DNA of 64,000 nucleotides, from the NCBI RefSeq assembly GCF_001194135.2, contig NC_069003.1, forward strand, positions 33,008,697-33,072,696. The letters are read 5' to 3'. Positions 41,331 to 44,300 of this stretch are shown here, in pieces (position 1 is the stretch's first letter; every line of letters starts with the position of its first letter). The position numbers were made by a program, and so were the translations under genes. This DNA comes from Octopus bimaculoides. Lineage: Eukaryota. The notes beneath the pieces are model-generated. The model made no database searches, was not told the DNA's origin, and worked only from the letters and a program-made list of their open reading frames with translations.

Positions 41331-44300
41331 CTAAGCAGCCATAAGTGCTGCCATGCGAGTTTTCCATAAATGGAGGCGTCCATGGTCTGGTTTATACTGC
41401 ACGTTCACACCATCAGTCACTAAGATACCATCTTGTCTCATCTGACCAAAGACATCACGGTTCCATTTGGTGAAACCCCATCTCTTGGAGACAACAATCT
41501 GGAAAAGAGACAGCAAATAGTTATAATGAATGGAAAAACTAATACAACTCAACCCAATATAAAGGTTACAAATTAAATACATAGTGAACTCTCTCCTGTT
41601 ATTCAACATTAAAAAGCTACATCTGGCTTTCCTTATATGCTGCTGTTCATGCATACTAACATTACACATCCTCTCATTACTATGCAGTATTATACTTTAT
41701 ACGTAGCATTAGCAGAGGTCAACACACTCTAAACTGCTTACACCATCACTGAAGTCACCTCTCTAACAGGAGAACCACATTTAACCACAAATATTCTTAC
41801 TGCTGTGCACCAGCTACATATGATGTCTACCTTCTCTGCTTGCAGAACCAATTCATGTAACCGGTAAAGCCGTCACAACACAAATGATACACACCTCTAG
41901 TTTATAATTTCTAATAACAGAAATAATCCTGTTCTAATACTTGGTAATACTACAGGACACAGAGTGCAAGTAGTGACCGTGTAAAAGATTTAATGTTGGC
42001 ACATAATGACCAGCTGCTCAGTGAGTAAGCAGTTGGCTTCGATGTATGCCATTCTAGGTTTAGCAGTCCTTTCATGAAAGGACAAATAACTTCCCACTAG
42101 AAACAAAGGTTAGATTCAAACCACACAACATCATTCGAAAGATTAATGGCTTGCATGATTAATCCAAAACAATGTGAATAAATAAGAATTACTCTTGACA
42201 GAATAATGTGAATGCTAACAGATTTATGCAAGAATTATTAAGCTGTTTGTTAATAATGCTAGTTCTATGAAATCAATCTAAATTCATAATTTTGTGCTTG
42301 AAACACAAGATGCATATTTTAGTTAGCAAAAAAAAGCACATACCTTCTGCCTGCCAGGGAACTTGAATTTGGCACGTCTTAAAGCCTCAACAATCATTGG
42401 TTCATGCATCTCCTTGGCACGTACAGACATGATCACCTGACCAATATTAACTCTGGCAACTGTACCCTGGGGTTTTCCAAAAGCACCTCTCATTCCGGTC
42501 TGAAGCCTGGCAGAGAGAAATACAAAAATTCAATCAGTACCATAAGGTTATACACTCTCAGATTGAGTACTTTGGGTAACCTACTTATGACAACAATAAC
42601 TACCATAAGAAAAATAAGGGGGTGGGGGACCATGGGATGGAAGAAATCCATGAATCTCAGTCTTAAAAAAATAAATTTAACACCACAAAGGTTACAGGCA
42701 CGACTTCTTTGGGAAGGCCATGTAAAAAAAGTAAATCCAACATGTCCAGGAAACAGGTTGTGATACAGGACTTACTTTTAGCATGGCAAACTATCTTGAT
42801 GATGACGCTAAAACCCTTCACAGAAATGGATAAAATATACATACATTGCCAACATATCTCATAGCAGAAGCCAATTGCCTAAAAGTGTTGAGATATGGGA
42901 ATCGCACCTGATACAAACATTGTCAATTTAAATGTTTTAGAACATAATGTCATTTCTTCTCACAATAGTTTAATAGCCAACTGAAGTGTAATTATAAATG
43001 AACATACAAAACTTTGTTTTAGCTTTACCTATCAGCTCCAGCACACGACAACATCTTGTTGATTCTGATGACGTGGAAGGGATGCAAACGAATTCTTAGA
43101 TGGAAGGCATCTTTGCCGCAATGTTTCACCAAATATTTGTTGGCACAGATACGACCAGCTTCCAGAGCCTCTGAAGAGATTTGTTCAAACTCGTCAGATA
43201 CTAAGTGAATACAGAGAGGAAATTCATCCACACGTGCCTTCTTGCGGCCAAGATCGAAGATACGAATCTTGGGATCTGTTTAAAAAATAAATAAAGACAT
43301 AAGCAATGTTTCTCACAGCAACTTCTCAAAAAGGTACAAAATGGATAAATGTCCTAGTCTGTAGATCAACCAAATGTGGTCAAGAAAAACCTTAACACAA
43401 TGTTCTTGAAATTTCTCTCAATTATATACTGATAGTTGAACTGGTAATTATTTTACCAGCTCTTTAAAAACAGCAGGGACAGAACCCAGAACATAAAGTG
43501 ACACATAGTGTAAAGCATTCTGGATATGGCTCTTAATGCATTACACGTGCGCGCACTGAAAAGCTTTAAACGATTACTTGCTCACGAACTGTCAACATAG
43601 TTATGTCCCTTGTATAAAGACAATGTATTTCTGTAGAATACGAATTTTAAAAAAATTACCTAACTTTTGTATATAGAGCAGCTATCGAAAGATAATGCAA
43701 CGTATTAACACACAATCAGCATGTAAAACAATGTAAAGTTTCTTATACAGGCGCCAAAGTATTGTCTCCCATTTGCCATCACTTTCAATATTAGTCTAGG
43801 AGATAACTTCTGGCTGTCTTTTTATCTTACTCTGGCCGTGGTAAAGAAGTCTACACCATATTTACATAGGCACTGAAGAAATCAATCACAGCAAATGTCA
43901 TTCTCTCACTGCATTATTAATTCTCTCTGATTTACTTAACCATTATCTGCAAAATTAAATCTCATGACTATTGCAGTAACAATGTTTAAATATGTACCCT
44001 GCCATCCAAAGAAAATAGAATTGGAATTCTCTGCAAGTCAGTGCCAAAATCTAGATTAGTATATAGAACTTTTCAGCAGTTAAGGGCAATGATATTTTAA
44101 GCTAATATATCTGATTTCCACAGGAAAAAGGGTTAATGATTGCTGCACTTAGAAAGATGAATATGAATACTCACCAGGTACACCACGACAGAAACGGGAT
44201 TTGGGATATGGCTTGTTCTTACAGTAGCGATAACTGAAACAAAGAATTAATGGAGTTACACACACATAATGACAATGCATTTCATTTAACAATTCAGACC

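Follow-up and report, generated by a model that had tools for sequence, protein, structure and literature searches.

A candidate SNORA16/snR46-type box H/ACA snoRNA in the last intron of the Octopus bimaculoides RPL10 gene

The RPL10 locus and its last coding intron

The stretch of DNA analysed here (hereafter the window) is 64,000 nucleotides (nt) long and comes from Octopus bimaculoides (assembly GCF_001194135.2, contig NC_069003.1, chromosome record CM046623.1, positions 33,008,697 to 33,072,696); all coordinates below are counted from its first letter. On its minus strand the window carries the gene for ribosomal protein RPL10, and the last coding intron of this gene contains an element of about 125 nt which, judged from its sequence, is very probably a genuine intron-encoded box H/ACA small nucleolar RNA (snoRNA), equivalent in function, and probably orthologous, to vertebrate SNORA16 and yeast snR46. 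Human RPL10 served as the tblastn query to locate the coding exons, five in all, with the help of the splice junctions, and splicing them gives a protein that matches the O. bimaculoides 60S ribosomal protein L10 on record at 100% identity. The element lies in intron 4 in the sense orientation, as is expected of an H/ACA snoRNA within an intron of a transcribed host gene, with its 5′ end 292 nt from the 5′ splice site and its 3′ end 428 nt before the 3′ splice site. The positions of the exons, of the host intron and of the parts of the predicted RNA are collected in Table 1. No further snoRNA was found in RPL10 introns 2 and 3, either by eye or with Rfam.

Table 1. Features of the RPL10 locus and of the predicted snoRNA, in window coordinates
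Feature	Position	Strand	Description and basis
RPL10 coding exon 1	near 45487	minus	MGRRPARC
RPL10 coding exon 2	44232-44176	minus	
RPL10 coding exon 3	43276-43028	minus	
RPL10 coding exon 4	42344..42506	minus	LQTGMRGAF...FPGRQK
RPL10 coding exon 5	41331..41498	minus	IVVSKRWGF...ALMAA and stop
Host intron, RPL10 coding intron 4 (last)	41499..42343	minus	845 nt, GT...AG; tblastn and splice junctions
Predicted mature box H/ACA snoRNA	41927..42051	minus	~125 nt; sequence, fold, Rfam SNORA16 match, conservation
5′ hairpin	41997..42051	minus	lower stem 42051-42045 with 42003-41997; upper stem 42036-42010
Guide element, pocket 1, 5′ strand	42037..42045	minus	ACAUCGAAG; predicted to pair with LSU CUUCGAUGU, 3′ of the target U-C
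Guide element, pocket 1, 3′ strand	42007..42009	minus	UCA; predicted to pair with LSU UGA, 5′ of the target U
H box	41991..41996	minus	ACAUUA, fits ANANNA; sequence; aligned to the SNORA16 consensus H box AgAGUa
3′ hairpin	41933..41988	minus	fold; lower stem UCUUUUAC/GUAUUAGA with a UU.UU mismatch
ACA box	41930..41932	minus	followed by a 3-nt tail, GGA (41929-41927); sequence

Architecture of the predicted RNA

Read along the minus strand, the element has the order UGGCAUACAUCGAAGCCAACUGCUUACUCACUGAGCAGCUGGUCAUUAUGUGCCA-ACAUUA-AA-[3′ hairpin]-ACA-GGA, or in detail UGGCAUA-CAUCGAAG-[CCAACUGCUUACUCACUGAGCAGCUGG]-UCAUU-AUGUGCCA-ACAUUA-AA-[3′ hairpin]-ACA-GGA. This is the layout of the H/ACA class, with a hairpin, a hinge bearing an H box, a second hairpin and an ACA triplet 3 nt from the 3′ end. 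The minimum-free-energy fold consists of the two hairpins and a single-stranded hinge, with an energy of -35.4 kcal/mol (z = -2.77), and only 2 of 200 shuffled sequences fold as well. The 5′ end of the mature RNA may lie 1-2 nt further upstream, at 42053.

The 5′ hairpin, which on its own folds at -20.7 kcal/mol, is composed of a lower stem of 7 base pairs (bp), an upper stem of 10 bp (3 + 7 bp around a 1-nt internal loop) and a pocket loop between them (pocket 1), and the distance from its upper stem to the H box is 13 nt (42009-41997). In the 3′ hairpin, the pocket is lined by the strands ACGGUC (41980-41975) and AUUACCAA (41948-41941), and the upper stem is formed by ACUAC/GUAGU with a GCAC/GUGU tip. 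A first-pass annotation of this DNA, made from the letters alone, had proposed the hairpin-H-hairpin-ACA layout, the 13-nt distance to the H box and RPL10 intron 4 as the host, and all three are confirmed by the fold, the measured spacing and the exon map. Together with the pocket pairing described below, the candidate displays every feature by which the H/ACA class is recognised at the level of sequence.

Predicted target in 28S rRNA

The octopus pocket was scanned against every U of the small-subunit (SSU), 5.8S and large-subunit (LSU) ribosomal RNAs (rRNAs) in two complete eukaryotic ribosomal DNA (rDNA) units (L025 and L034), both of which come from metagenomic eukaryotes rather than from octopus and were confirmed with the Rfam rRNA models. 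In both units the top site is the U of LSU UUUGA-U-C-CUUCGAUGU, also written UUUGA-U-CCUUCGAUGU, around which the two strands of pocket 1 form 9+3 bp and leave U-C unpaired, as in a canonical H/ACA pocket. The score is 12 at this site and at most 8 elsewhere, and the duplex has an energy of -11.3 kcal/mol, compared with -8.8 kcal/mol or weaker at any other site; the 9+3-bp pairing put forward in the first pass is thus the best match in both units, by score as well as by energy. Exact copies of the target motif occur in metagenomic contigs, at least 120 in number, and two of these contigs were confirmed as eukaryotic rDNA. A 33-nt stretch with the motif falls within matches to the Rfam model LSU_rRNA_eukarya, and L034, whose LSU match is partial, has the target U near model position 2874 of 3401, in the expected region.

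In yeast, snR46 guides pseudouridine (Psi) 2865 of 25S rRNA, with a 5-methylcytidine, m5C2870, located 5 nt downstream. In human 28S rRNA (old numbering throughout), Psi4412 is 100% modified and is likewise followed 5 nt downstream by a 5-methylcytidine, m5C4417; SNORA16A is the assigned guide of Psi4412, and knock-down of its host SNHG12 lowers this modification. The two sites are related by a constant yeast-human offset of 1547, which also joins seven more modifications (2921/4468, 2922/4469, 2923/4470, 2944/4491, 2946/4493, 2959/4506 and 2975/4522). The modified positions were placed on what we take to be the yeast sequence, and the base identity agrees at each one. From the best-match site, the modification maps and the constant offset it follows that the octopus pocket addresses the SNORA16/snR46 site. 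In the rRNAs of the metagenomic units, the pocket of the 5′ hairpin can pair around the LSU U that corresponds to human 28S U4412. The first pass had named yeast Psi2865 and human Psi4412, and the published modification data and the shared 5-nt distance to m5C bear it out. Octopus 28S rRNA is predicted to carry a pseudouridine at this particular position, which is conserved from yeast to human.

Relationship to SNORA16 and snR46

In searches of 601 nt and of 6 kb around the element, SNORA16 (RF00190) was the only H/ACA family that matched at E <= 10. The match (41930-42053, minus strand) covers model positions 1-135 of 135 with 25.1 bits, at E = 0.0079 in the 601 nt and 0.079 in the 6 kb, and the alignment sets UCGAAGC, GGUCA and the H box on their counterparts in the SNORA16 consensus.

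The octopus RNA resembles vertebrate SNORA16A/B (ACA16/U98b) in its two hairpins, in the location of the guide in the 5′ hairpin with a pocket of UCGAAGC and GGUCA, in the aligned H box, in the ACGGUC of the 3′ pocket and in the same predicted target U. Unlike SNORA16, it has a 3′ guide arm of 3 bp (UCA), compared with roughly 7 nt (UCAAAAA) in the consensus, the distance from the pocket to the H box is 1 nt shorter, and the 3′ strand of the second pocket has diverged. The host also differs, being the protein-coding RPL10 in octopus and the non-coding SNHG12 for SNORA16A. With yeast snR46 the octopus RNA shares the prediction that it guides the homologous U (2865), 5 nt 5′ of m5C2870. Yeast snR46 is an independently transcribed gene, and the base after the target is U in yeast and C in animals. 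On these comparisons the element is a probable functional equivalent and a likely orthologue of SNORA16/snR46, and the ACGGUC shared in the 3′ hairpin, outside the known guide, is the best hint that the resemblance reflects common descent rather than convergence.

The element is probably unannotated. Its score lies under the Rfam threshold, so that a pipeline using Rfam gathering scores would miss it, and no paper on octopus snoRNAs was found in our literature search. Rfam gathering scores thus appear to miss distant invertebrate orthologues that an analysis of guide plus context recovers. The result would add one well-supported H/ACA guide to the almost unannotated snoRNA set of cephalopods, and changes nothing in what is known of how H/ACA snoRNAs work.

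Conservation within Octopus

The same RPL10 intron contains the element in two other species; relative to O. bimaculoides, its 125 nt differ at 2 positions in O. vulgaris (L013) and at 4 in O. sinensis (L014). The rest of intron 4 is about 84% identical overall, and 82-92% identical in most of the well-aligned blocks. Non-exonic segments of 125 nt across 6 kb of the locus show a median of 15-16 differences, and only 1.7% of 4500 such segments are as conserved as the element. It ties as the most conserved non-exonic 125-nt stretch of the locus, the sole non-overlapping tie being located upstream of exon 1, in the presumed promoter.

In the three species there is no change in the H box, in the ACA or in either strand of the two pockets, and of the stem pairs only one varies; the 3′ hairpin is 100% identical among them. 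A single G-to-A change converts a lower-stem U.G into U-A in O. vulgaris and O. sinensis; in O. sinensis alone, the apical loop and the pair that closes it have one change each. Directly after the ACA, O. bimaculoides has a G where the two others have a U, and this G-to-U change breaks an alternative hairpin, UCCUGU/ACAGGA, that would sequester the ACA.

Evidence against a SNORA16-type guide and alternative explanations

Several observations weigh against the interpretation as a functional SNORA16-type snoRNA. The SNORA16 score is below the 35-bit gathering score, with an E of 0.85 over the whole window, and the element is therefore not a member of RF00190 by Rfam's own rule; the search with this model, which the first pass had named as a check, gave a full-length match to the family, alone among the H/ACA families, but below the threshold. 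The usual spacing from pocket to box in H/ACA RNAs is about 14-16 nt, and the 13 nt measured here lie at the short edge of this range; the SNORA16 consensus has 1 nt more. The guide's 3′ arm amounts to only 3 bp. No compensatory covariation is present in the three Octopus sequences, since these species are too close.

The distribution of the element also speaks against it. RPL10 of Argonauta hians (L001) has the same exon structure as the octopus gene, and there blastn aligned the exons only, Rfam SNORA16 gave no match at E <= 10, and a motif search of the 8-kb locus found the core ATCGAAG to be missing. R1, a covariance model derived from the element in the three Octopus species, gave no match in this locus, whether its filters were on or off, and both the Rfam model and R1 are negative in RPL10 of the oyster Magallana gigas, the abalone Haliotis rufescens and the chiton Liolophura sinensis. 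Hence deep conservation at the RPL10 locus cannot be shown, because no homologue was found in Argonauta, the nearest other cephalopod sampled, nor in oyster, abalone or chiton; the conservation in RPL10 introns of other molluscs, which the first pass had proposed to check, extends to O. vulgaris and O. sinensis only among the taxa sampled.

One explanation for this pattern would be that a decaying or silent extra copy of a SNORA16-type RNA landed in the RPL10 intron, with the working guide encoded elsewhere in the octopus genome. The absence of the element from RPL10 of Argonauta and of the three other molluscs fits a recent insertion, mammalian snoRNAs are known from the literature to spread as mobile copies, and the 3-bp arm and the 13-nt spacing are slightly sub-optimal. 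A decaying copy, however, would hardly be so much more conserved than the surrounding neutral intron in three species, nor would it keep its two boxes, the two guide strands and every stem pair except one intact. Moreover, a sense copy with intact boxes in the intron of a highly transcribed ribosomal-protein gene would be expressed and assembled, and the element bears no mark of retroposition, neither a poly(A) tract nor a target-site duplication. We consider this explanation improbable.

It is also conceivable that a chance pair of hairpins, or another kind of conserved intronic element such as a splicing regulator, merely resembles an H/ACA RNA. The E of the Rfam match at the scale of the window is in keeping with this, and the 9-mer of the guide, ACAUCGAAG, which is single copy in the window, is expected 0.36 times per window and has at least one copy in 33 of 100 shuffles; neither the 9-mer nor the Rfam match is significant on its own. 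The conservation, furthermore, runs some tens of nt past both ends of the element, and covariation is lacking. But many independent features would have to coincide, including an H box and an ACA box at the right spacing, and the bipartite match hits exactly the site that is guided by the sole matching Rfam family, with the same hairpin. The element is in addition in the sense orientation in a classic type of host gene, and it shares ACGGUC in the 3′ hairpin as well. The case for a snoRNA thus depends on how several features come together: the architecture, the distances to the boxes, the two-part pairing with a known pseudouridine site, the sense position in a ribosomal-protein intron and the conservation. 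In view of this, a coincidental resemblance appears very improbable.

The least probable of the alternatives, which we give hardly any weight, is that a functional H/ACA RNA now acts mainly on another substrate, by way of its 3′ hairpin or of a 5′ pocket with a new target. The literature describes such a case in Xenopus, where point mutations redirected SNORA16 copies (the SNORA16-like pug18S-137), and in Octopus the 3′ hairpin is fully conserved with no assigned target. The 5′ pocket, however, still fits the canonical 28S site in full, nothing else in the rRNAs comes close in score, and the 3′ pocket has no specific rRNA match. A functional guide for the SNORA16/snR46 site therefore remains the preferred interpretation of the octopus element.

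Lineage-specific host gene

Among the sampled taxa, the RPL10 location is confined to Octopus and is thus lineage-specific. Parsimony favours an acquisition after the split from the Argonauta lineage, with a loss in Argonauta as the less parsimonious alternative. In vertebrates, RPL10 hosts U70/SNORA70, as the first pass had stated, in its penultimate intron, and SNORA16A sits in SNHG12; like the first pass, we infer a host-gene switch. SNORA70 (RF00156) has no match at E <= 10 in positions 40500-46500 or in the whole window, and nothing SNORA70-like is present in octopus RPL10. The octopus element is similar to U70/SNORA70 in being an H/ACA snoRNA in a 3′-proximal RPL10 intron, and it differs in occupying the last rather than the penultimate intron and in belonging to another family. 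The target of SNORA70 is in 18S rRNA, unlike the predicted LSU target of the octopus element. Turnover of snoRNA hosts is well documented, so that a change of host in octopus is unsurprising. The locus offers a dated example of such turnover, with three Octopus species that have the snoRNA in a given gene and Argonauta and three other molluscs that lack it in the same gene.

The 3′ hairpin and human Psi4502

The octopus RNA has the 3′-pocket strand ACGGUC (41975-41980, minus strand) in common with the Rfam SNORA16 consensus, in which it is found within the conserved GACGGUCGC. The strand is the complement of LSU GACCGU(C), whose first base is 2 nt 3′ of the third U of GGGUUUAGACCGUC. In both rDNA units this U follows the first target at a distance of 90 nt downstream, and by the offset of 1547 it equals human 28S U4502, which is 100% pseudouridylated and has no guide assigned (PMC8522698). 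On the Rfam consensus line, which is not a real vertebrate sequence, the 3′ pocket is GACGGUC-GC...GC-AAC, its AAC is separated from the ACA by 16 nt, and a pairing of 7+3 bp around U4502-A4503 would result.

In the octopus RNA, the 5′ strand of this pocket gives 6 bp at the 4502-type site and the 3′ strand fits non-canonically only: either only the A is paired, or ACC is paired with GGU, in which case three bases of the target stay unpaired and the distance to the ACA is 13 nt, as in hairpin 1. The pocket scan of the two rDNA units returned no canonical rRNA site for the 3′ pocket. When LSU U's are ordered by duplex energy, the 4502-type site comes 1st among 868 and 4th among 919; SSU sites score better, and the match is not specific. 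Knock-down of SNHG12 has been reported to lower only Psi4412 and Psi2495 in 28S rRNA, and no published link between SNORA16 and position 4502 was found in the literature and its supplements. The idea that the 3′ hairpin is more than a structural partner, and that the SNORA16 family has from ancient times guided two sites of domain V, the 4412-type and the 4502-type, spaced by 90 nt, is a long shot. If it were true, the octopus RNA would provide independent evolutionary support for the 4502 assignment, and this lead is the one part of the present analysis that could matter more widely.

Proposed biogenesis and function

Following established H/ACA biology, the RNA would be transcribed within the RPL10 pre-mRNA and assembled co-transcriptionally with dyskerin/Cbf5, Nop10 and Nhp2, and later with Gar1. 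Splicing and debranching would release it from the intron, and exonucleases would trim it to the ~125 nt protected by the ribonucleoprotein. In the nucleolus, the 5′ pocket would then pair with domain V of the pre-28S rRNA, ACAUCGAAG with CUUCGAUGU and UCA with UGA, so that U-C would be left unpaired at the base of the upper stem and dyskerin would isomerise the U to pseudouridine. The modified U would correspond to yeast 25S Psi2865 and human 28S Psi4412, 5 nt 5′ of the conserved m5C and in the region of the peptidyl-transferase centre. The location in a ribosomal-protein gene would couple the supply of the snoRNA to the production of ribosomes. In a look-up for expression, transcriptome assemblies contained no record of a 41-residue open reading frame that overlaps the element.

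Other features of the locus

Intron 4 of RPL10 is about twofold longer in the two other octopuses than the 845 nt of O. bimaculoides, with 1677 nt in O. vulgaris (L013, 5442-7118) and 1670 nt in O. sinensis (L014, 5408-7077); the extra sequence sits 3′ of the snoRNA, where the alignment fails (window ~41640-41500). A perfect 18-nt palindrome, GTCCTTTCATGAAAGGAC, is located at 42066-42083, 15 nt upstream of the 5′ end of the snoRNA. One of its central bases is changed from C to T in O. vulgaris and O. sinensis, and a weak match to mir-22 was deemed meaningless. In the whole window, no family of Rfam scores at or above its gathering threshold; weaker matches, to mir-297, mir-466, mir-1277, mir-3149 and sno_ZL1, were rejected as composition artefacts, since they fall on TA/TG simple repeats (45840-46150, 17500-17750, 58950-59050, 6150-6240, 21250-21450 and 36880-37550). 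In the RPL10 locus of Haliotis rufescens (L016, 2346-2416) there is a long, near-perfect hairpin with weak matches to several microRNA families (<=26.8 bits, far below gathering), which may be an intronic microRNA-like hairpin or an inverted repeat.

RPL10 is arranged head-to-head with a gene for a protein with RUN and PX domains (window ~45600-46500 and beyond) in O. bimaculoides, O. vulgaris, O. sinensis, oyster, abalone and chiton (L012-L017), and the two thus form a divergent gene pair conserved across molluscs. Among the Octopus species, the intergenic stretch 45830-45580 matches the snoRNA in its degree of conservation. Four Logan contigs (L002-L005) carry a second cephalopod RPL10 protein cluster (P0003, 92% identical), with an uninterrupted RPL10 coding sequence and, on the opposite strand and about 200-340 nt apart, an uninterrupted RUN/PX coding sequence of 824-861 residues. 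Introns are absent from the P0003 contigs, which hold spliced transcripts only, and L002-L005 look like RNA-seq assemblies that joined both spliced divergent transcripts via their overlapping 5′ ends.

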